Origin: Lepidodermella squamata
Lineage: Eukaryota > Animalia > Gastrotricha
NCBI GenBank assembly: GCA_047495785.1
Contig: JBLDXI010000019.1
Span: 1,736,001 to 1,800,000 of the forward strand
Direction of reading: 5' to 3'
DNA: 64,000 nt
In this document: positions 4,362 to 58,303 of the stretch, in pieces
How positions within the stretch are numbered: position 1 is the stretch's first letter
How the letters are laid out: each line of letters starts with the position of its first letter
Translations under genes and position numbers: made by a program
Notes under the pieces: model-generated
Seen by the model: the letters and a program-made list of their open reading frames with translations, nothing else
Database searches by the model: none
Told to the model about the DNA's origin: nothing

Positions 4362-6718
4362 TTAACGAGGCCAGAGGAAGATCAACCCTGATGACGTACC
4401 GGTTAACCACGCTAAAATAGCTAATGCCGTTGATTTCAGCTTAGCTTCGTCTCCAAAAGCAACTGAAACTAGTATTGCAGCCAAAAACATCGTGATCAAG
4501 TTAGCTGCTGAAAATCTTAATCGAACCAGCTCTTTCAACCGATCCTCCGGTCCGTCGACATGACGCAGGGCATAAGAAAACCACGAACTGATAACCAGAA
4601 GAAATCCATTGACAACTACAACGGGTCCGATCCAGTAGGTCTCTTCACTTGAGAGTACAGTCAACCGACGAGCTATTGTGTAAATGTCTGATTCAATATC
4701 GTAGGATTGTTCTACAATATGATCTTCAATTCGGACATTCTGCTGATCAATCATAAGCCAAGACAACAAGTATGCTACTCCACCCATGAAAAAAGTCAAA
4801 AACACCTTATTGGCGGTCCCTGAAGGCTCGCTAGCGATGATTTCCTTGAAAATCTCAGATGAGCTGGTCACCGATGAAGATTTCCTATTAACCATTGGCG
4901 TTACTAGACTGGATCGTCCATTGTTTGAAGTAGCTGCTACTATTGCAACGTTAGGTTTGCGAAGTGTCGCTCTCACTTTTTTAAGATTCAGACGGGAATG
5001 GAACAGTCGTCCGAAGAATACACTCTTTTTGAAAAATAATCTTGATTCGTGCAAGGATAATGCTCAATAAATCTTACTTGATAGATTGTGACGCCAAGGA
5101 ACGCAAAAATGCGAGTTGCGAAGTAAGCCACATCCGGCTTGACTAATTCATGAACTAGGCTTAGGAATATTGAGGTCAAACAGAGTGAACAACTGGCTAA
5201 AAATACAGCGATTGAAGGCGAGTCAAATTTTCGCCCGAAAGTCAGAAGTATAAAATGAGATGTAGCCGAGAGGCAATTAGCGGCAATCATTATCCATTGG
5301 AACTCTGCCGAGAGGTTCACCTTCACGTCCTTTTGAATTTTACTGTCTCTGGGAGGTTTTCCGTCAGCTGTTGTCCAGTATGGAGCCGCATATTTTTTCC
5401 GCACGGAGTAACTAGAGTAATTCTGCGCAGATGCATTAGCAGCTCTGCGGAAGGAGCTTAGAATCTGCTGTCCATTCGCCCTAGTCCACTGCACAGCGAC
5501 GAATAGGTCGTCATCAACTTCAAGTCGCGACGAATACCTGAACCGACCCATTCGTAATCCAATGTAATCCACTTTCGCCATGGATTCATTGACAAGTTGC
5601 ATCACCTCAGAAGGGTTTGATTTGTAATCTCCTATAGTGAGATTTACAGATGCCAGACTGTTCTCAGTATTTACTAGGCTTTGAACTGCTGCCAGAGCTC
5701 CGTCATGACACTGAAACCGCCTGTCGTAATCAGCCGGTTTAGTCCCTGGTTTCCCGCTCACTTCAGCCCATTTCATGTCAAAGCGACGATCGAACTCGGT
5801 GGTATCATAGCCAAGAGTTGTGGCTAACCCTGCATTATCAGGATCCTTCGATGACCAGCTAATCCAAAACGAGATGACATACTGCTCTAAAACCATTGCT
5901 TTCGAGCATTGTGGCGTAACCATGTCTGGTAAAGCTGATGGTTCTGTGTATAGAGCAAAGTATAAGGTGAACGCATAACGTGGGCCCTTCAACCCGAATT
6001 CATAGGCTTTGCAAAGGAACTTTAAAACCAGAGGTAAAGCTGAGATGTAAACATCAACGACTCGAACATCTTTCGCTAGTATCGTTTGCATAGTTGCATC
6101 TTCAATATCAGGGACTACCTCGAAAAATGGAACTTCAAACCCGTTAGCCAGTGCTTCTTTAACCATCATCTGACCGCCTATGTAGTCTGCGTCGTTCTGG
6201 GTCGAACACAGGAGGCCAAATCTGTTCCATCGACCTATTTCTCGTATGAATCTGAGCCGAGAGTAAAGCATCGCTTCTGAACCAGCTCTTGTTCGGTACA
6301 TGTTAGGGTAAAGTTTCCGGTTGCTGGTCAAACTTGGGCTGTTACATCCAAAAGCAGAATGAACCATGTTCAGGTTGGGTATCACTGGTCCCAAGGATTT
6401 GCAACCTCCGGCAAACAATGCTCCGACTAGGATAGGCGCAATAATCGCGTCCTGTTTTTGATTGATAAGAAAGTTCACCACTGCTTGAACTGCAAGGTTG
6501 CTCCCAGGGCCTTCGTCGCGATAGATTGGCATTAAATTGTAGCCTGGAATGAGCTTTCGGGCGTTGGCTGCCTCGATCGCTATATCAACTTCGATTAGGC
6601 AAGCTTCTCCTTTCTTAGGTGCTTCTCCAGTAAAAGGGAGTAAAACCAGCATCGACATATTTTTCATCGCCGTTGCCCCGGCTAATAGAATCGACAAAAC
6701 AAAAATATCTGAAATCAT
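4362..6718 (-). CDS. Divergent class C GPCR, GABA-B-receptor type (Venus flytrap + 7TM, no Cys-rich domain, no C-tail)
   Basis: Signal peptide and ANF/VFT motifs (EAANARKLIPGYNL, SPSLTSNRKLYPNMYRT, GRWNRFG, FLCKAY). A 53-nt intron at 5077-5025 joins TIYQ|SVFFGR in TM3. Seven hydrophobic segments, ending GLIFLWPR*. Confidence 0.87.
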
Positions 6719-30247: not shown

Positions 30248-31162
30248 CTAGAATTTACTAATTTATCGATTCTGAACATGCAGCAACTCCGAAAAGTGAT
30301 GCCAGTTCGGTTGAATTGAATATTAAATCCGTGAATTGATAAAAATTTGCGACATATTAATATTTGTGAAATTCCGTACAAATTCCGTTCAATTATAACG
30401 TCTTATAATAATATCTTGACTGGAATTGATGACATTTTTTTAATGTTTCCTTCACTCAACTTGAAACTTTGCAGCTTCTAACTAAAAACTAAATTTGAAC
30501 GACTTACTATATAGCGATATGTCTTAAAACTCAGTTTAAAAGCTCAAACACAGCGCGCAGCCAAAAATATATTGGTGATTGGTGTAACCTTGGATGTAGC
30601 GTGCTGACGACCAAATGGCCGTTACGCAAGGCTTTATTTTGCGTTGAAAGACTTGGCATATTGGCGAGATAGAAAGGCCCGAGGCCCCAGCGCCTTCTGA
30701 CGCGCCTTCCGACGCGCGAAAAGTCAACTAGGTCATTAAAATTTAATTATGACCTGCCCGACCAGAATTACAGAACCGCTTTCTCCCTTTTTTCTCTACA
30801 CTGGAAAAGCTGGAGAAAACATTCCTGTCTCATTTAGATACTACGGCACGAACGAAATTGTTTTGCAAGGCAGCGTTATTGTAAAAGGGCCTCAAGTTGT
30901 TTCCTTACCTTGGCCCCTAACACCTCGCACACTCGGCATTATTGAGTGATGGAAGCCGCCATACCATTTTCTGTTCAAATTTTTTACACTAGTGGCTGCC
31001 GCTCCTTCGTTATAGGTTGTATAGGTGTGAAAGTTGGTGACGTTCGAAGCTTCGAGCCATGGTGCCATCATGAAGTTTTAATAGCCTCTGAAGCTAAAAA
31101 TAGACGAGCCACTTGGGAAGATGGGTGAAGGGGGGCATTCTTTTTATACTGAAAAGAAAGAC

Positions 31163-34100
31163 ATGGCTCAAATAATTCTTCTGACAGCGCTGCTGTGCAT
31201 CGCACCCGTCACTGTTGAATCGGGGACCTTTTTCAAGCGCATCTCAGGAGTCAAAATGACGCCTGCAGCTGGCAGTGGCCTTTCGAATCTGAACAGCTTC
31301 ACAATTCCGGGAATCACCACAGCAAGGGAAGAATCGATATGCGCTTCCTTATGCGGCGCCGATCTGCGTTGCGAAGCGGTTCAATTTCAAAAAAGCAACA
31401 AAGCATGCACCTTACTAACAACATCCCCAGATGGCTCATCGATGATTCAAGCTACTAACGATGCAGATTTCACGACATTTTCTTTGAATTGGCAGAGCGC
31501 CGTCGCTAAGACCAGCCAATGCACATCTAATTCTAAAAACTGTACATCCGCTTGGTATTTTGAAGCAATTAACCGCTTGGCTAATCAGGCCGTTTGCGAC
31601 AACCCGAATTTCCCGATCGAAACTCTCGAATACGATACGAGCTACGTTACAGATATAGCATACACGTCAAGTTCAGTGACGACTAATTCGGTGATCGGGT
31701 TGCCGCTCGACGCTCCAGCTTTCGTCCGGATAACTGCTGGCCATCTATCCCGCGCTTGTCTAGCCTCGAATGCCGCCGCAGGGAGTTGGTTCAGGGTCGA
31801 CCTCCAGCGATACGTTTGGCTGATGCAGTTCTGGTACCAATGCATGGACACCTCTTGCCTACCGCAGTTTTCGATGGAATCAAGCTTTGACGATGTCTAC
31901 TACAGACCGATAACTGCTGGCAATGGCCAGCCACAGTTGATAAATGGTCAACCCAGTGCGACTGTTACCTATCGCCGCTTTCTACCGGTTCTCCTGCGTT
32001 ACATCAGAGTAACCTCACAAGTAGCAAATGGCACTCTGTACTGCGCGAATTTCCGATTCGATGGTTGCCCTGCAAACTGCATGGAGGCTCTTGGAATCGA
32101 AAGTGGGGAAATTTCTGCGAACCAAGTCAACGCAACTGGAACTCCTCTTGCCACCTCCTTCTTTTTTCGCTTGAATTGGGGCCGGGCTGGTACTAACAAT
32201 CCATCCAACTTGATTGTTAATCTCGGCAGGCAGTTTATCGTCAATGCTCTGGAGGTTCAAGGTTGCAACAACATGACAGCCTGGGTTACGTCATTTTCGG
32301 TACAATACAAATCAAGGGATGTTGACGCATGGATTGACTTGACTGATACTCTTGGATCACTGGTTTTCCCAGGAAACACGAATCCAACAACAGTGGTCAC
32401 CATCAAGTTTCCTAAATCTGTCACCGGGCAGTTTTTCAACATAATACCAAAGGGGTTCTCCAGCGCTGTCTGTTATCGTGTCGAGCTTTTGGGCTGCAAA
32501 AGTGAGTGCAACTTTTTAGCTAATACGCTGATTTTAATTGTATTCCTCTTATAGCAATCCCGAACTACATGAGAAACCTAGCTTTGAATGCAACGGTGAT
32601 GACCCCTGCTTTCGATGCAACCCCGATGTCAAAACTATCCGATCCATCCAACCTTACCAAATTGAGATCAGTCAGAAGGCAGCATATACAGAACTGCACC
32701 CGCATAATGCCGAGTGCTCCCGGAGATCGACCATTTGTTACGCTTGACCTTGGAATCAGCACAACGGTAACATCGGTCGACTTAGTGACACCTGGAATAC
32801 CACCTCTCTTCACCCTGAATCCAAGTGGGATATGGCTGTTCGACTACTTGCGTGGGGGCGATGATTTATCGGAGAATGGCAATCACGCGATTATTTCACC
32901 TCAGTTAACCTACGGACCTGGGGTAGATGGCAGGCCATTAGGATCCCTTCAGTGGAGTGGAGCCGAGCGATACGTATTGATCAGGACAACTAATATAAAT
33001 GTAACGGATACGAGAAATGGTTGGACCTATGCGATGTGGGTTTATTATTCGACCTCATCGTCCAACGTATTCTTGATGCGCAACATGGCGAAAAATTCGT
33101 AAATTTAGATATCTAAACAATTTTGCCCTAATTTAACAAAATTATTTTTCATTGATGAAGCACTTGGAGGCTGAATATCAAGATTGCAGCTAACAGAGCA
33201 CTCACGGTTGACTACACGAGCAGTTCTAACACATCGTGGCAATGGCCGAGCAACACTGTGCAAGTGCCTCAAAATCGCTGGTTCTTCTTCGCGTTGACGG
33301 TTGATTGCGCGAGCGGGATCTCACGCATTTTCATCGACAACTATGACCGTGCCATCGCTCATGTCGGATGCGCTGCAGATGCTTTCCAGGTCTCACAGTA
33401 CTTCATGATTCACGGACCTTGGACTGGCAGGATCGCGTGCGTGCAGTTCTACCAAAGAGGTCTTGATCATTCCGAGATCGAACAGGCTAGCCTTTGTCCT
33501 TGGATGAGTATTTAAATGAATGATATTGCTGCACATTCTGTTTAATTTATAATTAATTCCCAGCCCCGGCTCCTGTTGCTTTATTCCCACTGGCTTGCTC
33601 GCTCAATGATGTGATGGGGCTTGGGTTGGCCCTTAATGCGAACGGCAATCCCCAATGTTCGAAAATGTTTGGATTTACTTCAACGTATGTCTACGAATTT
33701 CAATAAAACACTTGATTTATTAATTATCGATCAAAGGGCTTGGAATTTACCGACGGCTTCAGATTTTTTGGACATTCCGATTACAACTGCTCCGGGGAGT
33801 GCAATGAATCTAAACTCCTCGTTCACCGTCTTGCTCCACATAATGACATCAAACACAACTAACAACATGTTCCTGGGGTGGTTTTACGGTACGAACAACG
33901 CTTCAGTATATCTACAAATTGCGAGCGGATACTTGATTGGCGGGATCCGCTGCTCGAATGGCACTACTGCGGGCACCCCCATGACCAAAAAACCAATGCC
34001 GGGTTCGTGGGCTTATGTTGGCTTTGCGTATCACCCTATGAGCGATCCACCGTTTCGCGTATATCTTGATGGCGAAATGATTTCGTCAATTGCCTCGACG

Positions 34101-36703
34101 CGTTGTACATTGCAAACAGCCACAAATACCTTTCGCATAGGTCCATCGATGGCGGTTGCTTGCCTTCAAATCTATTCAACTATGCTTACAAGAAGGCAGA
34201 TATATTCGCTGAAAAGATGTCCTCTGACTTCTACTAACGATATGACTGCGATCTACAGCTCACCGTTTGACTTCGCGTTCGGCAGAGGCTCAGTTGTAGA
34301 CAGCTCTAATCCGATTGATACAATGGCGGGTACAGCTAAAAGTAGCAATACATTTCCGTACACAATCGAGGACATTTACAGCTCGTGTTCGTTGCCAACA
34401 ACTTCTTACTATTCCTCGGCAGCGGCAAATGTGCTGTTAGGCGGAGGCTTGGGAAACATAACGTCATACACAGCCGCAGTCTTCTTCCTAAACCGTAATA
34501 CGCCCAACAACAGCATAATGCCGATTCTGAACCTTGGAGAGGTCGGCACTAATTACGCGAAGTATAGCATCCAGCTTCAAACTCCTAATACGGTCAATTT
34601 CGAGGCATGTATGAATGTTAGCGGCGGTGGTACTTGGTATAGGCCTTCGATTTCGAATATGTCTATACCCATCTACGCTTGGCGACATTACATGATGTCG
34701 TTTGACATGACGCCGGGTTCGATGAAGTTTGACGGCTACGTGGAAGGATCCCAGATAATGTCGACAGCCATCCCGGATTCTAGGCCGCTACTCCTTTCGC
34801 TGATGAACATCGGCTATGATGTTTACTACGGGTATCGCATCAATGGAGACTACGCGTGCATGTCGATTTTTCAGGGGTACTTGAATCAGTACTTTGCAGC
34901 CGAATTAGCTACTCAATGCCCCGGACCTACCATGTGTAAGTTCATCGGTAGGGCTTGGATCAAACTTTACTTCTATTTATCCAGTGCAAGGCCACGTGTG
35001 CGAGACCGATATCACTACTAGAGCGACAATCAGCTCGAACAAAATCTGTCTTCGATCACCTGCGGGTGTAGCTTACAACGGTATTCGCCTGAACAATCGA
35101 TGGGTAGGCGATGCGAACACCAATGGATCATCCGCATGCTGCTGGCAGCTGGACAGTAGCGCCATCGGTGACTTCATACAAATTGAATTCCCCGAGCAAG
35201 TTGTTTTGTCGTCAATCGGCACTCAGGGCGATTACTCTACTGGTTACTACATTTCGAGCTATCAGTTCATGACTATAATAAGCCCCTCGAACAATCCATA
35301 TGTGTTGAATAAAGAGCAAAGTGGAATTAAGGTGGGTTCAGAAACATCTTTACTGAGAATAGCATCACTGGCATTTATTTATAGAATTTCACAGCCAATT
35401 CAGATGCCGACACTGTGGTTTGGAATTACTTTAGACCTCATGTGTTCGGGCGGAGATTCCGGCTTTATCCGATTACCTGGTTTGGCGCGATATCCTTAAG
35501 ATTGTCTGTGCGCGGATGCTTGGGTATTTATTGCATTTGTCTTGCATTTGTAGTGCTTTCAAGTTATGTATTATTTGATCTACAGATTTCTCTTGCCGAT
35601 CGGACTTGATGGATTCTATTGGCGAATTAGCTTCAACCCGCAATGGTGGAACTACAACTACCATCTGGCCCAATATAAACAGTCCAATTGATTGGAATGC
35701 TGCTAGTACAGATCCAGAGCCTTTTTATGGCGTCAAGTTCCCGGCTACTAAGGTCGTAACTGCCGTATTGGTTCAGTGCAGTGTAAGTAAAACTGCCTGG
35801 GTATCGAAGTTCCACCTGGTTAGTAGCCTTGATAATAGCATTTGGGTACCCTATACTCATCCAAATAATGGCTCTCGATTGCGAATTTTCGACGGCCCGT
35901 ACGCAGCGATGAATCCGAATCCGAGAATCAACTATCTGAAGCCTGTTATCGCAGCACTTGCCATTAGACTGTATGTTGATGAATTCGTATACGTCGTCTC
36001 AGCTAGAATAGGATTCAAAGGATGTTCATATTCCGAAGTGCCTCTGGTCAATAGAGGTGTCGATATTCGAGTCGGGGAAACTGCACCTGTCTCCGCGGCA
36101 GCTAGCGACGCACAAAACTTGTGCGGTATCGCGGGTGTTAAGAACACCCAGCTTTCTTACAATAGCCGGGTTTCAGTCCCTTGTATCAGGCAAATTTCGG
36201 GCCGATACGTAACGATCGTGGGTTCAACCAACACAACACTGGAACTTTGCCACATCGGAGTCTATAGTGATAACTCAACCGATTTAGCGCAGTACAAAAC
36301 TGTGTATTCAAACAATAATCTGACAGCTGCAAGCCTTCTCGCCTTGACATCCCCAGATGTTCCAGTTGCCAGTGTTTTATTGACTTCAGGTTGGCTGCAA
36401 GTTGATTTGGGAGTTCCGGTATTCGTCTCCAAAATCATTGTAGCAACTAATGCTAACGGAAATTGGCCATCAGATAATGCTGTTGGCACCTTGCGGCTGA
36501 CCTTCCGCGTTGGCGATTCCGCTGGTTCTTTACTAACCCAAAACGCCGTTTGCGAGGTTTGGAGTGATGGTCTCAGGTCGCCTAACGTTACCCCCAATCA
36601 AATGATAACGGCTCATTGCACGCCGCCGATTCAAGGCAGATATGTTAGTTTAGAGAAAGATGGCAACGGCAACATGTACTTCGCTCGAATAATGGTTTTC
36701 TGA
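31163..36703 (+). CDS. Secreted mosaic lectin-like protein, copy 1 (SP-PAN-2xFA58C-split F-type lectin[3xLamG-2xFA58C]-F-type lectin)
   Basis: Signal peptide MAQIILL; PAN (CASLCGADLRCEAVQF...CTL); discoidin motifs (CMEALGIESGEI, WVTSFSVQY, FPGNTN, YRVELLGC); LamG motifs (WTYAMWV, WFFFALT, IACVQFY); F-lectin motifs (NLALN, WLQVDLG, GRYV, LELCHIGVY). ORFs joined by ~50-60 nt GT-AG introns. No TM segment. Confidence 0.88.
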
Positions 36704-38688
36704 TCTTTTGGAAATCCAACAAACCGATGGACATTCATGTAGGCGTGATTTTCGTGGAAATTAAGTTACGATCAACATTTATAGAAGTAGATTCAGGCTG
36801 CGTTGCTGCGTTGGGCTGGGTTTATCCCAGGTATGGGTCGGGTACCGGCTTGGTTTTTCAAAACCCGCCCAATTCATTTTTGTTACCATTTCTTTCATCT
36901 CGCCATTAATTTGACACAAACCAAAGTGACATTTCAGTGAGTTGTTGATCAACTGGAGGGAACAATTATTTTTAACGGCTCCGCCCTGGCCGGCTCGCGT
37001 TTACAGATATTTACTGACGGGCCGGGTCGCGTCTCGATTATTACACCAATAGTTAACCTGATGGATTCAAGTTTACCCCGAGGCATTTTGCAATGTCTAT
37101 CTTGCGCACGCTGCTTGCCTCTCATGACGGCCAGATCTCCCAGAGCAGCCAGATCTCGCTCGATGACGGTTTAATATGCAATTCTTTCGTGTTGCGGGTC
37201 TCCTGAAAATGGCAATTCTATGAGTATCAGTCTCATCTTCGCTAAAGTATAGCATTTGCCAAATAAGCATATATATTTATATTGCTTGAATATCATGTTC
37301 TGTCTGACGATTAATGATTATGATTAATAAAAACTTACATGATATAGCAGCAATTCAATTCCCTTTCCATTTGGTTCTGAAGGTAAAGACCTGAGGGGAT
37401 GAAATATTGGCATAATGGAATCGATCGAGGCAAACGGGTTATATTAAAGGCGACATAAAAATGTCCCCGCAAACCAGTTTTTCTGGTTTCCTTGATCCCA
37501 GTGGTCCCAGTGGTCGGTGGTCGAGGTTTGCTGGAACCAAACTATTGGTTTGCTGGAGGTTTGCTGGAAAGGCTGTTAGCTGTTAGGAAGGAGTTTTAAA
37601 TGCAAAAAGTTTGAAGCTATTAGGGGCGCTTCAGTAACCCAATTTCCAGAAGTTTGCGCACAGTGATTCTTGGGATGCAAACGGAAAATCGAATTATAAC
37701 CTGCAGACCTTCATTCATGATACAATCATTAACAATTTTTATACTAGTTGTAAGACGCTCCTCGAGAGTTTTTATGAGAATTAAGGTTAAATAGGTTTGA
37801 GGGTTAAATTCATTGTAATTTCGACGCACGGAAAACGCGGCATGTTTAGAATCACAAATTGATTTATTAACGCCGTTTTCGATTGTTTCACGTTGTTTGC
37901 TCAAATTCAAGCCGCTTGGAACATCGCTACGTGGTGAAAGCAGGGGGCGGCATCCCCTTACAGCAGCTGGTTACATTTTATTTAATATACGTCATATCAT
38001 CAATTAGTAAGGAAAATGAGGGCGTTTAACATTTTTAGCTTCCAAAAAACGTAGCACGCAACAAAAGTTACAATAAGTTTATAAATATTCTTTAGCACAA
38101 TAAAAATTATTTGTTCGCACTGAACGTACTGCTAATAAAAATTTAATAAGCAAAGGAAAAAGGAAGACGCAGACTCGGTCAATTCGGTGCATACATTATG
38201 TGTCGACTAATTCGAGGTTGTTTCCATGAGCTAAAAAGCTGAATCTATTGTTTTCCAACGCGCACCGAGTGCTACATTTCACAAGCATGTAAAGAATTTG
38301 GTGATGAATTGATAAATCACTCTTAATCCGCCGAAATTTCAAACTGCAGTCCTCTTCACTCTCTTTCATTTCCCTTTCCCTATCCCTGCCAGTGTTCCAA
38401 GTGCGGGGGTTATGGGGGTGGCGCGTAACCCCTATTAGGGGCTGACCCAAATAATGAAAGGGGTGCCGCTTACCCCTTTTGGAATGCAAATTTTGAATGA
38501 GAAAATCAGTCTACACCATGGATAAATTTGAAATGTTTCATTCTCAATGACAAAATCGCTAACTTCAAGTGTAGCTTTCGATGGTTACATAGTGCGAATC
38601 AAAAACATCTTGGAGTACTCCAATTATTCGCGCGTAAAATTCAAAATTAAATTGTTTACGCTGCGGATTTATGAAAACAAATTAGATA

Positions 38689-39232: not shown

Positions 39233-42200
39233 ATGATTTTTTGGATTGCAATATTGTTCAATTTGGGTTTTGTCGATTGTGGCACCTACGTGAAGCGCAA
39301 CGTCGGCTGGAAAATTGTGCCGACTGTTGGCAGTGGTCTTTCAGATTTGAGTAGTTTCGTTATATCGGGCGTTACAACAGCTAAGGAAGAGTCAGTATGT
39401 GCGGGCTTGTGTGGCACAGACCCGCTGTGTCAAGCTTCGCAGTTTCAGATAAGCAGCAAAGCTTGCGTTTTGCTGACAATATCACCCGACGGTTCTTCAA
39501 TGGCTCGGCTGACTAGTGACTCAGACTTCATCTCGTCTACTATCAGTGGGCAAAGCTATATCACCAAGTCTAATCAATGCCCTCCGACGGTCAAAAAATG
39601 TGTCTCGGCTTGGTATTCTAACGCTATTTTACGGTTGGCTGCCAAGCCTTCATGCGATAAGGACCTGAACACAATGATCGAACCGTTTGATTATGACACG
39701 AGTTATGTCAGCGATTTAGCTTACAGCTCAAGCTCGGTAACAAACAATATCATTCTCAACCTGCCACTAGATGCTCCTGCTTTTGCTCGCATCACCGCTG
39801 GTCACCTATCGAGGGCTTGTATGCTATCTAACTCGCCCGCCGGCAGTTGGTTTGAGGTTGATCTCCAGAGATACGTTTGGATGACTCAATTCTGGTACAA
39901 ATGCTTCGACAGCTCTTGCATTCCTCAGTTCCGCATTGAAACCAGTCTGGACGATGTATATTATGCCCCAATAACAACAGGTCGAGGGCAAGTGAAGGTT
40001 CTTATTTTGGCTGTATGATCAATTCTTTATATTGAATCATTTTCAGCTGTTGAATGGAACTGCAGGCTCTACAATCACCTATAAACGGTTTTCTCCAGTT
40101 TTGCTGCGATTCGTTAGAGTGATATCAGCGGTCGCCAATAGCAATGTGAACTGCGCTAATTTTCAATTCGAAGGCTGCCCGGCCACATGCATGGATCCTC
40201 TTGGCATCGAAAGTGGGGATGTCCCGTTTAGCCAGGTCACTGCTCCAGGCACATCAGCCAACTCGTTCTACTACCGATTAAACTGGGGCATTGCAGTAAC
40301 CAACAACCCGAGCAACCTGATAATAGATCTCCGAAAGCAGGTCATCGTGAACGCTTTCGAAGTTCAGGGATGCAAAAATCTGTCTGCTTGGGTCTCCAGC
40401 TTTGCTCTGCAATACAAAGCGCAAGATTCGGACAGATGGATTGATTTAACTGATGCTTTTGGATCAACAACGTTTCTTGGAAATGCGAATCCAACGACAG
40501 TAGTTACAATCAAAATCCCAAAGCCCGTAACCGGGAGATTCTTTAATGTTATACCAAAAGCGTCTCCGAACCTACTTTGTTATCGTGTCGAACTGTTGGG
40601 ATGCAAAGGTGAGCATTGAGAAATTAATTGAGGAACACTTCTAGCCATTTCATAATTTAGAAATTCCAAATTACATGAGTAACCTGGCTTTGAACGGAAA
40701 TGTCACAGTCAACGGTAACACTTTTGATACGAATCCAATGTCTAAACTTTCGGAGCCTGCTGTACTGACGAAGCAAAGAACGATAAGGAAGCAACACATT
40801 CAAAATTGCACTCGAATACTCCCCGTTACGACCGGAGATCGGCCGTTTCTAACTGTTGATACAGGTTCGATCTCGCAAATAACGTCAGTCGAAATAGCAA
40901 CGCCTGGGTGGCCTCCTCAGTTTACACTGAACCCTCACGGGCTGTGGTTATTTGATATCATGCGTGGCGGAGATGATTTATCGGAGAATGGAAACCACGC
41001 GGTGTTTTCGAACCAGTTGACTTATGGTGCCGGTGTGGATGGGCGCCCAATGGGATCTCTTCAATGGAACGGAACTGAGAGGTACGCGCTGGTTCGAACC
41101 AACAATATCAACGTCATAGATCCAGCCAATGGTTGGACGTTTGCAATGTGGGTTTTCTACTCAACTGCAACTGGAGATGTATTTTTGATGCGCAATATGG
41201 CGAAGAACAGGTTAGATCAGAATGTATTGATATTTCACGAGCTTGATTTATCTCTTCGAAATTAGCATGTGGAGGTTGAATGTCAAAATTCTGGCTAGCA
41301 ATCGAGCTATCAAGGTGGACTACACGAGTAGCTCCAACGTATCTTGGGCCTGGCCGACTACCGATGTTGTTGTACCACAAAATCGCTGGTTCTTTTTCGC
41401 AATAACTGCAGATTGTGCCAGTGGAATCTCAAGAATTTTCATCGACAATTATGACCGTGCTATCGCTCATGTTGGATGCGCTGCCGATGCATTCAGAATG
41501 TCCCAATACTTCATGATCCATGGGGCATGGACGGGTAGAATCGCCTGTATGCAATTCTACGCAAGAGGTCTTGACCATTCTGAGATTGAGCAAGCCAGCA
41601 CCTGTCCTTGGCTAAGTAAGTCGACAAAAATAGGCCTGCAACATCAAACTTAAAAAACATTTTACAGCACCTGCTCCTCTGGCGATCTATCCATTCGCTT
41701 GCTCTCTGAATGACGTAGTCGGTTTCGGGCCGAGCTTCACTGTAAACGGTACATCGCAATGCGAGAAGATTTACGGATTCACATCAACGTAAGCATCAGA
41801 GCTAAAAATCGTGACTCATTTCGAAGTGTAACTCATTTCAGAGCACTGAGCCTACCTTCGAACTCGGATTTCCTTAGTATGCCGATGACAACAGCCCCGG
41901 CCAGTTCACTGAACATGCCTCACACAGCAACATTTCTCATGAATATCATGACTACATCTGCTACGAATGGCACAATTCTCGGCTGGTATTACAACTCAAG
42001 CAACTTCACTGTTTATCTAGGTGTTCGAAATGGGGTTCTGTTTGGCGGGTATCGATGCAGCGATGGAACCGGTAGAAATCTAACTTCATCACGACGAGTA
42101 GTGCCTGATGCATGGACGTTTGTCGGTCTAACATACCACTATCAAGCCGATCAATCTTTCCAAATATATCAAGACGGCGAAGTAGTGGCATCCTCAGCGT

Positions 42201-44781
42201 CGCCGCGTTGTGTACTGCAAACTGCGACATCTACATTCCAAGTCGGTCCGGCAGCAGTGACTGTAGCTTGTCTGCAAATTTACGCTACGTTACTGACAAG
42301 AAAGCAAATTTATTCGCTGAAACGATGTCCGATCACATCAGCTCCGGATATGCTTTCAACCTTCAGCTCGCCATTGGATTTTTCGTTTGGCAGAGGTTCG
42401 GTCGAGGATGCGTCCAATGCGCTAAATGCCAAAAATGGATCAGCTCAAGGCGCAAGTTTGCCGATGAATTCTTTGGATGATACGCTATCGCTAGGATCTT
42501 ATTCTGTGACTGCCAACAATTATTACTGGTGGTCGCAAGCCAACGCTTTATTCGGCTACGGCACAGGAAATGCGACGTCCTATTCGATTGGTGTCTTCTA
42601 CAATAATCGCGAGGCAGCGAGCAATGTTGTCACTCCAGTTCTGAATATTGGAGAAGCGGGAACAAATAATGCCAAGTACAGCATCTTACTCAAAACGGCT
42701 AATACTATTAGCTTCGAGGTTTGCATGAATCCCGGTGGTTGGTACAAGCCTCTCCTAAACGTATCAGTACCGCTGAGGACATGGCGGCATTACATGATGT
42801 CGTTCGATATGACACCTGGTTCAATGAAGTTCGATGGTTTCTTTGAAGGCGCCACTTCAGTGTCGACGGCACTTCCGAATTCAGCGCCTTTTTCGACATC
42901 TCATGGCCATCTGGGCTATGATGTTTATTACGGCTTTCGCTCGAATGGAGATTACGCCTGTCTATCAATTTTTCAAGGATATCTGAACCAATATCTAGCT
43001 GCTGAAATAGCAACCCAATGCCCTACCCCGACAATACGTAAGTCGAATTAATTATGCCAATTTTAACATATTATTCATCTCTTAAAAAGTGCAAGGTCAT
43101 GTTTGCGAAAGTGACCTAACTGCAAAAGCAAATATTGTAGGAACGGCTTATTCAGCTCCTTCCAGTGTTAAGTTCAATCAAATCCGCCTTAACAATCGGT
43201 GGGTCGGGGACGAAAATACTTCAGGTTCAATAGCGTGTTGTTGGCGTCTCGTAGATGCAGAGACGTTCGTTGGATTTGACTTCGGGGAGACCGTTTCGAT
43301 TTCGTCATTGGCTACTCAGGGTGATCATGTATCAGGATATTATGTCTCAACCTATCAGATACAGCATTATAGCAGCATGAACCGGAATGCATGGATTTTG
43401 AATAGAGAAGTCAGCGGTCCCAGGGTAACCTATTTCACCCTCAGAGGTGGTAACGTTAACACAAAAATTACTTCCAGGTTTTCAATGCCAATTTCGATGG
43501 TGATACAGTTGTTTGGAACTTCTTCCGCCCCCATGTCTTTACAAGGCAGTTCAGAATTTACCCACAGACGTGGTTTGGCGCCCCTGTTCTCAGAGCTATG
43601 ATACGAGGTTGCTTAGGTTGTTGTTTCTCATTTTTTCTCCCGGATTATTTTATCCCTAAACTTCAGACTTTTTCAACCGTGGTGAGCAGAACTTATGGGG
43701 CTCTGTAGAAAGCGTATCTTCTCGAGGTGTTGGATCCGCTGTAACTGTGAGACCAGATGTCAACTCAGCATTTACTTGGATCCCAACTGCTAATGATCCG
43801 GAGCCATTTTATCAGGTCAGGTTCGCAGGGTCGAGAATCATAACGGCGATTCACGTTCAGTGCTCCGACTCGGCTCCTACTTCGTGGATAACCAAGTACC
43901 ACATTCTAACCAGCCTCGACGGCACAATATGGGCGCCATATACCTACCCTAACAACTGGTCACGCCTCCGAATCTTCAACGGCCCCAATGCAGCGATCAA
44001 TCCCAACCCTATGATAAGTTACTTGAAACCAGCTGTTGTCGCTTATGCCATTCGGTTGGTTGTCGATGAGTTTTATAACGTTCCTGCTGTCCGTCTCGGA
44101 TTCAAAGGTGGTCCATACTCCGACATTCCGACAGCTATGCGATATTTTGACATTCGCATCGGGAATTCGACCCCGGCTAACACATCGGTAATCGAATCGC
44201 AACAGTGGTGCAACGCCAGGGTTCCGCCAGTGTCTTATAATGCCAGGGTGACATTCCACTGCATAAGGCCAGTAACAGGCCGGTACGTATCGATCAATGC
44301 AATGTGGGCGACTACAATCGAGATATGCCAACTCGGCGTTTATAGCGACAATTCAACTGATTTGGCTGCTTACAAAGCTGTAACATCAAATAACTCGATA
44401 ACAGCCACTAATTTACTCGCAATGACCACTCCTGGTTCAATCAATGCGTCGATCTCAATGGCTAGTGGCTGGCTGCAAGTTGATATCGGAATTCCTATTT
44501 ACATATCAAAAATAATTTTGACTACAACGTCATCTGGATCATGGTCGACTGATAACGCCATTGGGACTATGAGGCTAACATTCAGGGTCGGAAACTCTGC
44601 GGGTTCAGCCCTGGTTCAGAACCCTATTTGCGACATATGGACGGATGGTTTGCGAGCTCCGAATGCGATTCCTAATCAAATGATTACCGCCCACTGTACC
44701 CCGCCCTTACAGGGACGCTACGCCAGCGTGGAAAAGGATGGAACTGGTACCATGATTTATTCGCGAATTATGGTTTTCTAA
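39233..44781 (+). CDS. Secreted mosaic lectin-like protein, copy 2
   Basis: Same domain order and mostly the same intron positions as copy 1. Shared blocks DYDTSYV, RITAGHLSRAC, GGDDLSENGNHA, WRHYMMSFDMTPGSMKFDG; ends RIMVF*. Confidence 0.88.
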
Positions 44782-45540: not shown

Positions 45541-47283
45541 ATGTTGAAATTTACAACTTGTCTTATTCTCGTGTTGGGCGTGAAAGAATCGTTGACTGCA
45601 AACACGACCAGTCATGATTTTTGCCAACAGGCCATGACCAATCGCAACGGCAAAGCCTTCTTCCGAGACCCGGTTGATTGCCACAACTACTACCAGTGCT
45701 ACTACCTCAATGAAACATGGGTAGAGGGCGCTAAACACCGCTGCCACCCCGGTCAATTCTGGCACGATGAAATTCAACAGTGCGTACCCGAACGGCCGGA
45801 AACACCCTGCCAGGACCGGTGCCGTGACGAAGAGACCGCAACTCGAGGCTGTTATCCCGACCCGAATAATTGCGCGAAATTTTTCCGGTGTTCAAACCGA
45901 ATTTCCCACGCCATGTGCTGCCCGCATGGGACTCGGTTCAATGCCGACGGGTGCCGGTGTGACGAAGACCCAGGGTGTGTAACGAAATGCGAGAAAGACG
46001 CTGGCCCTTCAACGCTAGCCACGCCGCAAATTTGGTCGAATGACACGCATTGCATCGATTTGTTCAATAACACATTCTACTACAACCCGAGCCGCGATCC
46101 GGACGTGTTCTACCAGTTGAAACCCGATTCTAACAAGCTGTATGTTATGCACTGCCCGGCTGGTACCAGGTTCCAGCTTGAATCTTGCAACTGCGAGATG
46201 ATGAACCCGCCGATTCAAGTTTCTCCTTCCCGGCTATGCTGGCTCTATTTGCCGTTTGATAACGATTTTAAGGATTATTCGAATTCGAAATATCAAACTA
46301 TTCGAAATGGGTATACGGTGATTGATCGGCAAAATTACGCGCATGGCCATGGGTCGTTATATGTTAACAATGGGTGGATTGATGTCCCTGGCTTGAAGGG
46401 CATGGATTTTCAAAATTCTGGCTCTTGGTGCCTATTTTACAGGTGAGCAAAAATTCAACAATTTGCCGCTGAAAATTTTAGCAACATTTGGTCTAGTTTC
46501 AAAAAATATCAAATTTACAAAGGTCCAAAAAAAAGAATTTTTATATTGAAATTTTTGAAATGAGAATTTTGAAAAGTTCAAATTTCAAAATTCAAAATTA
46601 AAAATTTCCAAAAAAATTCAAAGTTTCAAATTTAGGTCTAATGTTTAGGAAAATTTAGCAATTTTTACAAAAGTATTATTTACAAAAATTCGAAAATTTG
46701 AAAATTTGAATTTTTTAGATGCCGATCCGGCGTTGAACCTGCTCATATATACGAATGCCGAAATTCTGGCGGTCTTCTTTCGAATCGTGGCATGACTTCA
46801 AGTGATTACTCAATCGCGATGGCTAGCGCGCCTTCCGGACCCGTTGCCCTGCTCAATTTAGCCAATCCTAGCGAGACGGTTGAATCGCGACCTGGAAGAA
46901 TCGAGCGATCCGGCTTCAATCAAATGTGCGCAGTTTACGACGGCGATAGTCTAGATATTTTCATCAATGACGTAAGTTCCAGCTTGAAGCTAACTTCGAA
47001 TTTAGATGAAACTTCGATTCTTTAGGAATTGAAAGATTCGAAGGCTACTAAAGGTGGTCGCGTCACTTTGAGCCAAAATCCTTTCTCGATCGGGCAAGAC
47101 TGGGTTTTCGGAAATTTTTCGGGCTTCATTGATGAAGTCTTGATTTGCAAACAAGCGCTCAGGGAATCTGAAATTACGGCTCATTTTCAAGGTCGCGAAG
47201 CTCTGGTTCGAGCTGGCCTAATTCCGGACACGGCGGACAACGCTGGAAATTCGACTACGGCTGCCATACAATCGGGAAATTAA
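45541..47283 (+). CDS. Secreted protein with three chitin-binding peritrophin-A (ChtBD2)-like domains and LamG (Pif/BMSP-like)
   Basis: Signal peptide; DPVDCHNYYQC...CHPGQFW, DPNNCAKFFRC...CPHGTRF, CPAGTRF; LamG LYLPFDNDFKD...FSGFIDEVLIC. Exons ~45541-46443, 46720-46971, 47026-47283. Confidence 0.88.
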
Positions 47284-47334: not shown

Positions 47335-49084
47335 ATTGAATGGCATAAATTTCTTGAAAATAAAATGTTGCTATCAAAAAGTGGCGACGGCCTTTTGCGA
47401 TCGAGTGGCTGGGAGCGGGACAAAGTCGATAAAATAACCGAACACAACTTGCGATACCGAGCTGGCGCTGAAACGTATTGGCAAACTCCGAATTACAAGT
47501 GGTTCGGCCAACCCTGGCATAATTTGGTGCGAGAAAAAACCGGCTACTTACCGACTATGGCCCAGCCAAAGCCAGGCCGATTGCACTCGGGCGACATGAC
47601 AACGTGGGGCGACCGATCAACAGTACCAGATGTTTATTCATGGCTCAAACCTTCGCTAAATCGATTGAAGTAATTTTCTGAAAATTCTAGTTTTTGGTGA
47701 AATGATAATTTTCGTTTGTTGAATAGGAAAAAATGTATCGGACCTATCCGAGATCAAGACAGATGTGCGGCTTGTTACGCATTCGCTGCTGCAAGTGAAT
47801 TTAATTTTTTAAATATGTTTTTTTTAATTCTGCGTTTTGAAAGCTTGTGCCCACGCGGTGTATTGCGTTCGATCAAATGGCACGCTGTTGAGCCCCTTTT
47901 CAGTGCAAATGCACATCGACTGCTCGAGCAATAATGGCTGTGTAGGCGGGAACGCTCCGAATTGTTTTGACTACATGCTGAAAACGGGTCGCTCAAAGCT
48001 CGAAACCGACTACGAATATACGTAGGTGAACCTTTTGATAATGTCCAAGTCCAGAAAACGTTTAGAAAAATTTAAAACGCCATAAGAGTAGTAGCCATAT
48101 GGGTTTGGTAAGGGATTGACCGAACCCGAAGAAAACGGATGAAGATAAAAAATTGCTAAACCAGTTACCATCCAGGTTTTCTCCTGTTAATTTTAAATTT
48201 CTTCGGTAAAATCTTGGATAAATGATAGCAGATTGTCCAGATGGGCTTGATTTTCCAGGATTTTCCACGCAAAATTACGAAAGGATTTGAAAAGCTCCGA
48301 AAATCAACTGATAATTCATGAGATGAATTTCAATTTTTCCAACATTTTTCCACAATTTCCGAACACAAAGTTTCCGAACCAATTTCAAACTTCAAACTTC
48401 GCAAAAGTTTGATTGTTTTCTAAATAATAGATCCGGCAAAACTAAGCAAGCTGACGTTTGCAAGGTTCAGAAAATTCCTGGCGATTACGGAACTCCATTG
48501 GCTGACTGGACTTGCAGCGCAGCTTTGAATAATAAACTAGACATGGCGACTCGAGAGGCCAAGCTACAAGCGGCTATTTACGAGAAAGGCCCAATAGCTG
48601 TCACATTTTTCGCAGATGAAGCCTTCATGAACTACGCCGGTGGGGTCTATTACAACCCTAATTGTCCGGGTCAATTAACCGCAAATCACGTGGTAATAAA
48701 ATTTCCGATAGTAATTTTTTTTTAATTAATTATAATTGTTTTAAAGATTGTCGTTGTAGGTAAGATCTCGAAATTTAGTATGAATGAGAAAGGACGTTAA
48801 TTTTTTGCGATTGAATAGGTTGGGACACAGAGTCCTGGATAATCCATAACAGGTTGGTAAATGTACTCGGGGACCTTGGGAAATGTTAATTTTTTACAAT
48901 TTCTTTATCCTATAGCTGGGGAACAGAATGGGGCGAATCAGGTTTGTAATAATTTTTTAATTGCTAGCCAAATTAATTCGTTTTCCTAGGTTACGCTCGG
49001 ATCCGAAGAGGGCTTCCGATACCAGGTTCGGATTGCTTCATCCTATCAGCGCCCTGTTGGCCGGAACCTATTGTTCGGTCTTGA
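47335..49084 (+). CDS. Papain-family (C1A, cathepsin L-like) cysteine protease; 5' exon not evident
   Basis: I29-like propeptide (EWHKFL...KITEHNLRYRAG), QDRCAACYAF (Gln and catalytic Cys), NNGCVGG, ANHVIVVVGW (His), WIIHNSWGTEWGESGY (Asn). Several micro-exons. Confidence 0.85.
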
Positions 49085-49253: not shown

Positions 49254-50686
49254 ATGAGCCTGCTTGATGTTAGTGACGCTTTCTGGTCGCGCCATATCTG
49301 GCTGCCATCCGACTGTACCTGGGACAACATGACCAACGACGACCCGGCCGTTTACAAGCCGCAGACGGGCGATCTCGTCTACGCCTTCGGACTCGCCTTC
49401 CTCGCTACAGCCGTTCGCTTTTTCACCGTTCTCTACCTGGTAAAACCCGTCGCCAGGTTTTTCCGCCTTGTCGACGACGAACCAATCACATCGACGCGGC
49501 ACTCGCAGCAAACGGTTTCTGGCGGTGTCCTAGAGGCGGTTTACAACAGCGGCAACCGGCACCCGTCATCGTCCGAGGTTCAATGGCTGGCTAATGAGTT
49601 GAATATGGATGAGGCGAATGTCAAAATTTGGTTCGCTAGTCGACGCCGCCAAGACAAGCCCCCGGTTCAGGAGCGATTTATCGAATCCGGCGTCAGGGCT
49701 TTGTATTTCCTCTTCATGCAAGTAAGTCCCAGTTGTAAATCAACTAAATTCAAAATTTATTGCAGCCTTGAAATTTCAAAAATTAACAAAAATTAACAAA
49801 ACATTCTGAATAAATCGCTGATTGAAATTAAAATTCGAAAATAATGAATTCGATTTGTTTAATTTTCTAATGAATGAATTACAAAATGCGCTGATTTGAG
49901 TTTTTGAATTTTTTGAATTTTTTTGAAATTTCAAATTCGGTTTGAATTTAAAATGTGAATTTAAAATTTGACCCTTGAATTTTCGGAAATTAAAATTTTG
50001 TAAATTGTAAATTAAAAAAATTCAATTTTTTTATTAATTTAAACAATTTTTTAATTTTAATTCTTTGAAATTCGATTTTTCAATTAAAAGCTGAAGTTTG
50101 ACTTTTGAATTATTTATAGCTTTACGGGCTGTACATTTTGTGGGATAAACCTTGGCTGAGCGATACCCAACAGTGCTGGACCAACTACCCCAGCATCCAT
50201 GTACCCGACTCGCTATTTTGGTTCTACATGATCACAACTGGCGCCTATCTCGCCAGCGCAGCTCGCCTCATCCTAAACCTGCCCTGGCCGGCTGATTTCA
50301 CGGAAAAACTGACGTATCACCTGATCAAGCTGTCGCTACTCGGCGTGTCATGGTCGGCCAACCTTGTCCTCCTCGGTTCGCTGGTTCTGCTGTGCCACGA
50401 TGGCGCGCCTGATTTTTTCATCGAGCTGTCGAAAATGGCGCGTTACCTCGGCGCAAATCGCTTCTCGCGGCTTTTCTACTTCATCGCAACTGCGCTTTGG
50501 TTCTGCTTCCGACTCGTCTTCTTCCCGTTCTATATCCTCAAATCGCTGCTCATTCAGGCTAAACTCGCCTTCCCGATTTACATCATCAGCAACGCGTTGG
50601 CCTATTCGATTCTTGCGATTCACATTTCGAAATTTATCGAAATGCTTGGCACGATTTCCGAGAAAGTTTTGCAACCGATTGCCTAA
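49254..50686 (+). CDS. Homeobox-containing ceramide synthase (LASS/CerS)-like protein with divergent Lag1p motif
   Basis: FWSRHIWLP...TW, Hox-like VKIWFASRRRQDKP, RFIESG, WDKPWL...CWTNYP, Lag1p region DFTEKLTYHL...LCHDGAPDFFIELSK. One AT-rich intron at ~49722-50119. Confidence 0.88.
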
Positions 50687-55912: not shown

Positions 55913-58303
55913 ATGCGTATAAATTGTATTCAATTTACCGTTTTTGCTTTCCTGGTCAATATACACTGTTTGGAATTTTCTAATTCTTCTACATCCGCTA
56001 GTAAGCTAACTCCGCTAGACATCCTCGCCATGTACATTGCTACAGGAAGAGTGACAGATTCAGCTTGTTACATCGCCACAAAGCTTCTTGTCGATGACAT
56101 CAACTCGAGAAGCGACATTCTTCCGGATTATCGAATCAACATTATTCCTGTTGATGAGGATCTAGAGATGCGGAAACCAGATACATGGAAGCGATATTTA
56201 TTCGGAGATATTGGGTCCAACTTCAACCCTGCCCCTATTGCAATGCTGCCTACATCATCAGGCCGCTGCCAGTACCTATCAGCTATTCTTCATCATTTAA
56301 ACCTTGTCGGAATATCACCAAGCTGCTCCACTCCGGCAGTTACGGCGAACCGAAGAATTTACCCGAACTTGTATCGAGTTCGACTACCGGGAGATCTCGT
56401 AAACTATTCCCGGCTAAAACTCATAGAGCAAGTCGGAAAATGGAGGAGAATGGCAGTTTTAACCAGGTCCGATGTTCCGCGTGATTACGGCTCTGCCATC
56501 GAATTTTACAACGAGGCGACCAAACGCGGTATTCAAATCGTATTTTTCGAAGCGATTGACCCTTCCGTGTCCGACGAAGTCCTTGTTGGCCTGAAGCGTT
56601 CCGATGCTAGAGTTATACTTGTCGATACTACTTCAACAACCTTCACACCGCTTCTATTTTGTAAAATGGCTAAACATGGCTTTACAACTGATGGGAAGTA
56701 CGTTTTCCTACTTCAATTTGAGGCTTATGAATCTCCTACAATTCCGCGATCATACTTTTCCGCTGAATGTCCACCTTCTCTTTATATGGAGTTTTACTCT
56801 GTAAGCCTATTTATTGGGCAACTTGCGGACGCGCAGACGAATAATGGATTATCATCAGCTAATTTTGATCTAACTTCATTCGAGAAGCGATTCGACGATG
56901 CTGCTAATTTTACTCGTACTGATGACTACTTCAGACGGCATCAGTGCTTTGACGCGATGCTTCAAATTATCCTAACATTGGACAAGGCTGAGAAATCGAT
57001 GAAAGCCGTGAACATGTCCCTAGCTGACTACAAACTTCAGCCGTCACTAGTCATGATTCAGGTTAACAAATCAGCCTCGGAACTTGCCTATTCGAACCTG
57101 CGTTATGGGCAAGTTCGTTATTCAAGCCGGTTAGAGCTTGACAATTTTCCGCAATTCGTGCGAACGTTTGACCTGAAACAAAGACGAGACGTAAACATAT
57201 TTGGAATTACTTGCAGTGAAAATCGATCGATTTTACAGGTAGAAAGTTATGAAATCAACCAAATAGCCGCCTATGAATGGAAAACTAAAGATGGTCTCCC
57301 GACGAAAGATCAGTCAACCCGCATTGCTATCCCAAGCCAATCCGCGGTTGTAAACCATTCAATATGTTTCGCATTAGCTGTAGTTCTGATTTTTGGGAAA
57401 ATCTATGTTTTAATCCGAGAATGGAAAGCCAGTTCAAGGTATAGAGTGAGCTCGGCAACCGAAGAAGCCCTTTCAGATTTACAGAATGTGAGTCATAGTT
57501 CAAGTACTATAATGCCTTTCGAGCCGATTGAAACGAATGTTTCATACTTTTCGCTGACTAAATCGAGCCTCAACTCGAAGTCAAAGTTGAGCTTACCGTC
57601 AAACACTCAGAGATATAAGATCGTTATGATGTTCGCCTGCATTCTTCTTGACTTGGCAGCGAGTTCATTTTTCTTTGTTTCTGGCGTTGCGCCAAAGTCA
57701 TCCGGCTATTTTTGCGCATCCACCGCTGTTTTGACATCGTTAGGCATCTCGCTGATTCATCATTCTCAATTTGTATTTCTTCTTGGCAGTCATTGTGTTT
57801 TGAACTCGAGATGCTCAAAAGTACGTTTCAGTTCATTTTTCACCTCGACTTATTTCTTCACCGCAGGATTCATCATTTTCCTTTGCGCCTTCTGGCTTAT
57901 CGGAAGTGATCTTAGTCGACAAACAACGGTGTTCGTATCCTACGAAGCACCAAGCGATGTTTACACCAGCTCCATAGCTTCAATTTGTGCTATGCCTGGG
58001 ATGCATCCAGCTTTCATTGTAATGTGTGCACTCAATGCTGTGGTTTTACTTGGATCAAATTTCCTTGTGTATTCCATCCGTTCCTGTCGCAATGCGTGGA
58101 GTTACAATTCCTCTGTCGAGGTTTTACGCATGGGTTTGTCTGCAGTCATCGGCGTATCTCTTTTCGCAGTTTTTGCCCTCATTACGGCTGCAGTTCAAGA
58201 CTCCTTGTCAAAGCAAGTCGCCTTGAATTACGGATTTGTAATATACTCCCTTAACGTAACTTTCATTTACTTCTTACCCTCAACAATTCTCATTAAACAG
58301 TAA
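55913..58303 (+). CDS. Intronless divergent class C GPCR, GABA-B type, paralog of 4362-6718
   Basis: Signal peptide; DINSRSDILPDYRI, NRRIYPNLYRV, GKWRRMAVL, RRHQCFDA, RYSSRLELD, WKTKDGLPTKD shared with the first GPCR. 7TM ending FIYFLPSTILIKQ*. Confidence 0.88.
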   Translation: MRINCIQFTVFAFLVNIHCLEFSNSSTSASKLTPLDILAMYIATGRVTDSACYIATKLLVDDINSRSDILPDYRINIIPVDEDLEMRKPDTWKRYLFGDIGSNFNPAPIAMLPTSSGRCQYLSAILHHLNLVGISPSCSTPAVTANRRIYPNLYRVRLPGDLVNYSRLKLIEQVGKWRRMAVLTRSDVPRDYGSAIEFYNEATKRGIQIVFFEAIDPSVSDEVLVGLKRSDARVILVDTTSTTFTPLLFCKMAKHGFTTDGKYVFLLQFEAYESPTIPRSYFSAECPPSLYMEFYSVSLFIGQLADAQTNNGLSSANFDLTSFEKRFDDAANFTRTDDYFRRHQCFDAMLQIILTLDKAEKSMKAVNMSLADYKLQPSLVMIQVNKSASELAYSNLRYGQVRYSSRLELDNFPQFVRTFDLKQRRDVNIFGITCSENRSILQVESYEINQIAAYEWKTKDGLPTKDQSTRIAIPSQSAVVNHSICFALAVVLIFGKIYVLIREWKASSRYRVSSATEEALSDLQNVSHSSSTIMPFEPIETNVSYFSLTKSSLNSKSKLSLPSNTQRYKIVMMFACILLDLAASSFFFVSGVAPKSSGYFCASTAVLTSLGISLIHHSQFVFLLGSHCVLNSRCSKVRFSSFFTSTYFFTAGFIIFLCAFWLIGSDLSRQTTVFVSYEAPSDVYTSSIASICAMPGMHPAFIVMCALNAVVLLGSNFLVYSIRSCRNAWSYNSSVEVLRMGLSAVIGVSLFAVFALITAAVQDSLSKQVALNYGFVIYSLNVTFIYFLPSTILIKQ

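Follow-up and report, generated by a model that had tools for sequence, protein, structure and literature searches.

We describe here a 64,000-nucleotide (nt) stretch of Lepidodermella squamata contig JBLDXI010000019.1 (the window, within which all positions are counted) and three tandem genes on its + strand, whose products contain what we read as a single F-type lectin domain (FTLD) broken into two halves by five whole domains of other families. The genes were recognized from the map of open reading frames (ORFs), from tblastn searches with exon pieces and from intron positions shared between paralogues, and their models are built from ORFs and GT-AG splice sites. Gene 1 (31163-36703, +) has eight exons and encodes 1717 amino acids (aa), as judged from the ORF map, its GT-AG introns and Pfam matches on the exon pieces; the introns lie on the + strand at 32502-32554, 33099-33160, 33508-33563, 33685-33736, 34936-34984, 35332-35384 and 35524-35585. 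Gene 2 (39233-44781, +), a paralogue with the architecture of gene 1, has nine exons, encodes 1708 aa and is collinear with gene 1 in tblastn at 41-82% identity per piece. The GT-AG introns measure 49-62 nt, and their positions are common to the two genes. Gene 3 (61563-64000, +), a third paralogue seen by tblastn and in its ORFs, is cut by the end of the window. An earlier interpretation made from the letters alone, which we call the sequence-only reading, had taken the three as copies within one protein; that description has to be given up, because each gene starts with a methionine and a signal peptide of its own, and both gene 1 and gene 2 reach a stop codon inside the window.

The encoded proteins, of ~1,700 residues, each begin with a signal peptide. 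In gene 1 this is followed by a PAN domain, two discoidin-like domains, the N-terminal half of the FTLD (N-half), three LamG domains, two FA58C domains, the C-terminal half of the FTLD (C-half) and, last, a complete F-type-lectin-like domain. In the N-terminal part, Pfam on exon pieces recognizes PAN_1 (24 bits), a discoidin-like region and F5_F8_type_C (58 bits), the last of which we call FA58C-2. The whole protein is predicted to be secreted, with the signal peptide as the basis for that assignment, and no obvious membrane-spanning stretch was seen when the sequence was judged by eye. For a protein assembled from PAN, discoidin, LamG and lectin-like modules, a function in adhesion or recognition would be expected.

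The genomic sequence itself could be compared with contigs from a DNA sequencing run that looks independent of the assembly. Compared with the assembly over 31100-36750, these contigs differ at 7 single bases, carry 2 small insertions with 4 extra bases in all and show no rearrangement; both insertions and some of the single-base differences sit in the 33099-33160 intron, as alleles would. The contigs retain the introns, as in the case of one that covers 34812-36111.

A split F-type lectin domain

The N-half of gene 1 (32557-32793, +; aa 447-526) follows FA58C-2 and contains the motif N-C-T-R-I and the strands 'RPFVTLDLG...VTSVDLVTP'; it lies with the start of LamG-1 in a single uninterrupted ORF (32524-33099). 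The C-half (36026-36268, +; aa 1493-1573) carries 'VDIRVG', two cysteines that correspond to C108/C124 of canonical domains, 'GRYV' and 'LELC', and it shares the ORF at 35579-36700 with FA58C-4 before it and the terminal domain after it. Because both halves share open frames with the domains that flank them, neither junction needs a splicing assumption. In gene 2 the N-half is found at 40663-40905 (+) and the C-half at 44113-44346 (+), and in gene 3 the N-half (63012-63248, +) continues into LamG-1 up to the end of the window. The split that the sequence-only reading had described in the first two genes, together with the break after the N-half in the third, is thus where it had been placed, with boundaries that are now slightly extended.

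The halves are 966 aa apart in gene 1 and 964 aa apart in gene 2. The insert of gene 1 (32794-36025, +) is spread over six exons and consists of LamG-1, LamG-2, LamG-3, FA58C-3 and FA58C-4. On the exon pieces of this gene, Pfam places Laminin_G_3 at three positions in the gap and F5_F8_type_C at two: LamG-2/3 (53.1 bits) and FA58C-4 (44.2 bits) exceed the curated cut-offs, as does FA58C-2 ahead of the gap, and the two domains that are split by introns are recovered in pieces, LamG-1 at 24.3 bits and FA58C-3 at 17.6+13.2 bits. In other words, what occupies the gap is a series of autonomous domains from other families, and at ~965 aa and five domains the insert is roughly six times as large as its host (~160 aa). 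Neither the N-half nor the C-half has a Pfam match when tested singly, which is an annotation pitfall, as domain callers that work from sequence miss both halves. As a separate observation on the insert, LamG-1 shows the highest conservation in the whole protein (32794-33507 in gene 1 vs 40906-41615 in gene 2; 79% identity, with a ratio of nonsynonymous to synonymous proportions of differing sites, pN/pS, of 0.17), and its motif G-[LI]-W-L-F-D-x3-G-G-[DN]-D-L-[SG]-E-[NH]-G-N-H-A, nearly invariant even in the metagenome homologue described below, may mark a functional centre.

The assignment of the two pieces to one family draws on profile comparisons. A hidden Markov model (HMM) of the canonical FTLD was built from 10 domains of fish, cnidarians and molluscs (Sparus aurata, Nematostella vectensis, Montipora foliosa, Solemya velum and Haliotis rubra) that came from a representative-protein search. 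Against this model, the C-halves of gene 1, gene 2 and the metagenome homologue score 33.6, 28.7 and 20.6 bits at positions 83-144 (83-143 for gene 2). The N-half of gene 2 scores 6.1 bits at positions 6-71 and that of gene 3 scores 9.7 bits, values that 0/1000 shuffles reach in either case. When N-half and C-half are fused in silico, the scores become 39.2, 40.1 (gene 2) and 26.9 bits, with one envelope across the junction and 0/1000 shuffles reaching them; when the order is swapped to C+N, the scores are lower (31.4, 30.8 and 19.6 bits). The intact terminal domains of the same proteins score 35.4 and 32.3 bits, roughly equal to the fused halves.

Profile-profile comparison by hhalign gives the same picture. 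In one comparison, the N-halves reach a P-value of 4.8e-4 (score 21.2) and the C-halves 2.9e-12 (66.3), and the fused halves reach 4e-16 with a score of 87.4, the sum of the half scores, over template positions 1-150. In a second comparison, the N-half alignment matches the canonical profile with P 2.2e-4, residues 55-78 falling on template 51-74, and the C-half alignment with P 7.6e-12, residues 8-75 falling on template 85-148. None of 120 column shuffles of the N-half reaches its score (maximum 19.3 vs 27.9), and the reversed alignment scores 10.7. Searched against the whole PDB, the C-half profile finds 3CQO (FBP32 of striped bass) as its top match, with an E-value of 9.4e-5 over residues 224-288, followed by 1K12 (E 0.26). 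An ESM feature search with the N-half alone returned PF22633 (F5_F8_type_C_2) clusters at 0.95, the top ten all belonging to the family or its clan, a result that we treat as a lead and not as a test. The N-half is found only by the canonical-FTLD profile and by profile-profile comparison; as an N-half detector, an HMM based on the intact domain of the window genes themselves failed (-1 to 0 bits). The two pieces are collinear, non-overlapping parts of one family, the first running to template position ~74 and the second starting from 85. The sequence evidence for family membership is strong in the case of the C-half; in that of the N-half it is moderate but consistent. It identifies the two pieces as halves of one domain by descent. 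The sequence-only reading had made its case depend on the fused halves scoring as one domain, and they do so.

What has been lost at the break? The gap between the halves corresponds to template columns 75-84, which remain unmatched and which read N-R-D-G-T-Y-G-T-Q-R or S-R-x-D-C-C-P-E-R in canonical domains. The fucose-binding motif of the family is H-x24-R-x-D-x4-(R/K), and its R-x-D-x4-R part belongs to the loop CDR4 on the sugar-binding face (PMC5712786). By alignment, then, the insert occupies CDR4, in place of the R-x-D-x4-R segment. The motif is absent from the split domain altogether: where canonical domains have C-[ST]-H-T, it has N-C-T-R-I, with His replaced by Arg in all three genes of the window. 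These two features, the break at the fucose loop and the change of CTHT to CTRI, had both been anticipated by the sequence-only reading. The contiguous Cys82-Cys83 pair is absent as well. In the region of the calcium site, the N-half has '...LSDPS...' roughly at the position of the canonical 'A[VT]DG', a stretch in which alignment confidence is low. Given the change of His to Arg and the replacement of CDR4 by 965 aa, fucose binding is not expected of the split domain.

Residues that bridge the two halves can be named from the eel lectin, whose disulfides are Cys50-Cys146 and Cys108-Cys124, whose salt bridges include Asp64-Arg131, and whose sheets (beta2, 3, 10, 6, 7 and beta5, 8, 11) mix early and late strands (PMC5712786). 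Because the sheets combine strands of both halves, neither half should fold alone. In the split domain, Cys50 has its equivalent in the N-half, at the Cys of N-C-T-R-I, and Cys146 has its equivalent in the C-half, at the Cys of 'LELC'/'IEIC'. All four disulfide-type cysteines are aligned in genes 1 and 2, with bonds that are predicted, and the N-half Cys is also found in gene 3. In the metagenome homologue, the Cys50 and Cys146 positions are Ala and Ser, i.e. lost together, and both cysteines of the C108/C124 pair remain. Every copy also retains the counterparts of Asp64-Arg131, namely the Asp of 'T[LV]D[LT]G' in the N-half and, in the C-half, the Arg of 'GRY[VL]'. Genes 1 and 2 have diverged to saturation at synonymous sites (synonymous proportion, pS, 0.71-0.86), and pN/pS is 0.27 for the N-half, 0.50 for the C-half and 0.17-0.39 for the other domains; as these values are well below 1, both halves are translated and under purifying selection.

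A metagenome homologue and the intact terminal domain

An exhaustive phmmer search with the last exon against 1.8 billion representatives returned one true relative, a 356-aa ORF call (P0002) from an ENA metagenome, and the remaining matches were discoidin-repeat proteins or ordinary F-type lectin proteins. The metagenome contig in question (ERZ23486764 scaffold_1507, here L001) has 38% GC (guanine plus cytosine) and eukaryotic genes, and it contains a homologue with ~32% identity to gene 1, in which both the domain order and the split are unchanged. On this contig, the N-half and the whole of LamG-1 lie in one ORF (1630-3066), as do FA58C-4 and the C-half (5060-6295). The gap is again filled by autonomous domains, LamG-1 matching Laminin_G_3 at 32.7 bits in its intron-free ORF. 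Metagenome scans yielded no further relatives, and word-indexed protein searches gave only the query itself; as far as the public data searched show, the protein family is confined to the L. squamata genome and this one contig.

The terminal F-type-lectin-like domain is complete in the window genes, where it occupies 36269-36700 (+; aa 1574-1717) in gene 1 and 44347-44778 (+) in gene 2. In gene 1, where it is also galactose-binding-domain-like, it matches Pfam F5_F8_type_C and F5_F8_type_C_2 below threshold (22.6 and 20.7 bits), and it too is without the fucose-binding motif. AlphaFold2 modelled this domain from a 30-sequence alignment with a predicted local distance difference test (pLDDT) of 83.4 and a predicted template-modelling score (pTM) of 0.81, and in this model residues 61-75, the CDR4 equivalent, link strands 41-60 and 76-82 as a surface loop of low confidence. 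Foldseek matches the model to 3CQO (template-modelling score, TM, 0.72) and 1K12 (TM 0.68), and also to lectinolysin, SpX and CBM32 modules; as modelled, the terminal domain has the jelly-roll topology. From a 3-sequence alignment of the last exon, which spans FA58C-4, the C-half and the terminal domain, AlphaFold2 gave a pLDDT of 36, a value that says nothing either way.

In L001, the terminal domain is itself split (5768-6585). A complete SUEL/rhamnose-binding lectin domain of ~95 aa (Pfam 30.3 bits, profile 1-80 of 80) is inserted at 6008-6290, and the host resumes at ~6350 after a 59-nt GTAAGT...AG intron. Against an HMM of the window's intact domain, the flanks score 17.1 bits (positions 5-66) and 42.3 bits (78-143) and, when fused, 58.9 bits (5-143). 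Because the window genes keep the terminal domain intact, the identity of the host halves is in this case beyond doubt. Read together with the penultimate domain, the alignments indicate that one loop took an insertion twice in this protein family.

Elsewhere in the window, downstream of gene 2, a gene at 45541-47280 opens with a signal peptide, after which a Cys-rich stretch looks by eye like repeated chitin-binding (peritrophin-like) modules, and its later exons resemble, again by eye, a ConA/LamG-like domain. Exons of a papain-family cysteine protease follow at 47701-48722 (motifs 'CAACYAF' and 'NGCVGG'). A two-exon ceramide-synthase-like piece at 49254-50686 has a homeodomain-like stretch and, after it, a TLC-type membrane domain, a combination that points to a metazoan source. 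Long single-ORF genes at 4988-6718 (-) and 55913-58303 (+) resemble class C receptors of the G-protein-coupled type, and each looks to have multiple membrane spans and a periplasmic-binding-protein-like ectodomain.

Proposed re-formation of the split domain

Do the two halves meet within one molecule, between two molecules, or not at all? We favour the first of these, to which we give a probability of roughly 0.62: the halves would re-form one jelly roll in cis, and the host would serve as a structural hub. The first ~80 residues of the host, up to the strand before CDR4, and the last ~80, from the strand after it, parted by ~965 residues, would fold together as a single beta-sandwich, and the five inserted domains would exit and re-enter that sandwich via one loop on the former sugar-binding face, so that they form a closed loop of domains. 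With the fucose site lost, through the change of His to Arg and the replacement of the loop by the insert, the split domain is probably a structural hub or clasp and not a fucose lectin; in the L. squamata paralogues a cross-half disulfide probably pins it, and the binding of ligands would be left to the LamG, discoidin, PAN and terminal domains. We infer the closure into a ring or clasp from the jelly-roll topology together with the conserved cross-half residues, and we consider it a reasonable step. The one co-variation event, at the Cys50/Cys146 positions, and the two retained pairs are suggestive, not proof, of halves that stay together.

Several observations weigh against folding in cis. 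Taken alone, the N-halves are weak, scoring -0.5 to 9.7 bits against the canonical FTLD HMM with an alignment that always ends at ~71, and the N-half profile has no match in the PDB. No part of the protein evolves faster than the C-half, which is 41% identical between genes 1 and 2. With only two lineages, the joint presence or absence of the Cys pair amounts to a single event. Lastly, no public RNA run includes the locus; the only run that does is of DNA, and it contains no splice joints. Some of these observations are what one would expect if the pieces were relics of a domain that an insertion disrupted, which would form no joint jelly roll and would act instead as linkers or as extra strands on FA58C-2/LamG-1 and on FA58C-4/terminal domain. 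The faint family signal of the N-half, the rapid change of the C-half, the lost sugar-binding motif and a calcium-site motif that is not evident in the N-half all sit comfortably with such decay. However, both halves can still be recognized at ~32% identity, pN/pS is well below 1, the Asp/Arg and Cys pairs, whose known role is to bridge the halves, have been preserved, and an unpaired half jelly roll, with its exposed hydrophobic face, would be unlikely to persist. We regard relics as unlikely, and as the least unlikely of the alternatives. On a related point, a duplicated unit of the form FA58C-FA58C-half, under which the two halves would derive from separate ancestral domains, gave no signal either way, the four discoidin domains being about equidistant from one another (<=32% identity, E 5e-6 or weaker).

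Pairing between molecules deserves the same scrutiny. By domain swapping, the N-half of one molecule could pair with the C-half of another, giving dimers or head-to-tail polymers and, ultimately, an extracellular network or coat. The same sequence complementarity of the halves fits this arrangement, the 965-aa spacer does not force pairing in cis, the N-half is exposed during synthesis long before its own C-half is made, and F-type lectins are reported to oligomerise (PMC5712786). Yet known discontinuous domains generally close in cis (PMC13114784), the ~95-aa SUEL insert at the same loop in the metagenome homologue is most simply closed in cis, and the present data contain no sign of oligomerisation, so that we judge trans pairing to be distinctly unlikely. 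A bolder version, in which CDR4 is a reusable socket for whole domains and the halves pair between molecules as a domain-swap polymerisation device that builds a secreted lectin network, we likewise hold to be quite unlikely. A split that exists only in the gene models is highly improbable. The halves might come from separate transcripts, or the insert might be spliced out as a long cryptic intron, which would leave an ordinary, unsplit domain, and the models do come from ORFs and GT-AG sites at a locus covered by a DNA run only. Against this, the passages from N-half to LamG-1 and from FA58C-4 to C-half are open, without stop or splice, across the three paralogues and L001; the introns are all 49-62 nt, which would make a 3.2-kb intron exceptional; no start codon with a signal peptide occurs inside the insert; and the domain order is conserved in two lineages.

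If the halves do re-form one domain in cis, F-type lectins would join the families able to host inserts, and the protein would become a test case for folding, in which the halves of a beta-sandwich are made far apart in time. The jelly roll would have to wait for ~965 residues before it could fold, an extreme case of co-translational folding in the secretory pathway. The arrangement also shows which loops of a lectin scaffold accept large insertions, knowledge that is useful for protein engineering.

Comparison with known systems

Compared with canonical FTLDs such as AAA (1K12) and FBP32 (3CQO), the fused halves align end to end with the family profiles, and the C50/C146 and C108/C124 cysteines and the Asp64/Arg131 pair are present in the split domain; unlike those domains, the split domain is discontinuous and without the fucose motif, and no single piece of it reaches the Pfam curated threshold. 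Reviews of F-type lectins from 2017 (PMC5712786) and 2025 describe only tandem arrangements and mosaic ones with CTLD, pentraxin, CCP, transmembrane and FA58C domains. Neither a search of the 2025 review for terms of insertion or splitting nor a text search of the literature brought up split or discontinuous F-type lectin domains.

Domain insertion of the A1-B-A2 type is itself common, occurring in 20% of multidomain proteins according to a 2026 ECOD survey, in which nested and multi-domain inserts, e.g. Si3 of cyanobacterial RNA polymerase, are documented and inserts are consistently smaller than their hosts (PMC13114784). Lectins, galactose-binding domains and jelly rolls do not come up in a text search of that survey (PMC13114784). 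The sequence-only reading knew of no described protein with this nested architecture. That statement needs to be divided: the principle of insertion is a common one, whereas an FTLD as insertion host and an insert about six times its host are undescribed as far as the two FTLD reviews and the text search show. Like the A1-B-A2 proteins of ECOD, the present one has a discontinuous host with a gap held by autonomous domains; unlike them, it has an insert of ~965 aa in a host of ~160 aa, counter to the rule that inserts are the smaller partner.

Parallels are also offered by phospholipase C-gamma, with its split PH domain into which SH2-SH2-SH3 is inserted, and the integrin beta subunits, with their nested PSI/hybrid/beta-I domains. 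In both, as proposed here, several signalling or adhesion domains interrupt one loop of a small beta-sandwich or beta-barrel host, which closes up again in cis, but the host fold, the inserted domains and the setting are different, and the inserts comprise two or three domains, much shorter than 965 aa. A further parallel is the SUEL nesting in the metagenome homologue, which concerns the same protein family and the same loop, between the 'VTLVT' and 'VKVG' strands, and differs in having a single ~95-aa insert and in affecting the terminal and not the penultimate domain. Thus, the principle of domain nesting is already known, and what the L. squamata genes add to it is a real case of an unusually large, conserved insertion into a lectin scaffold.

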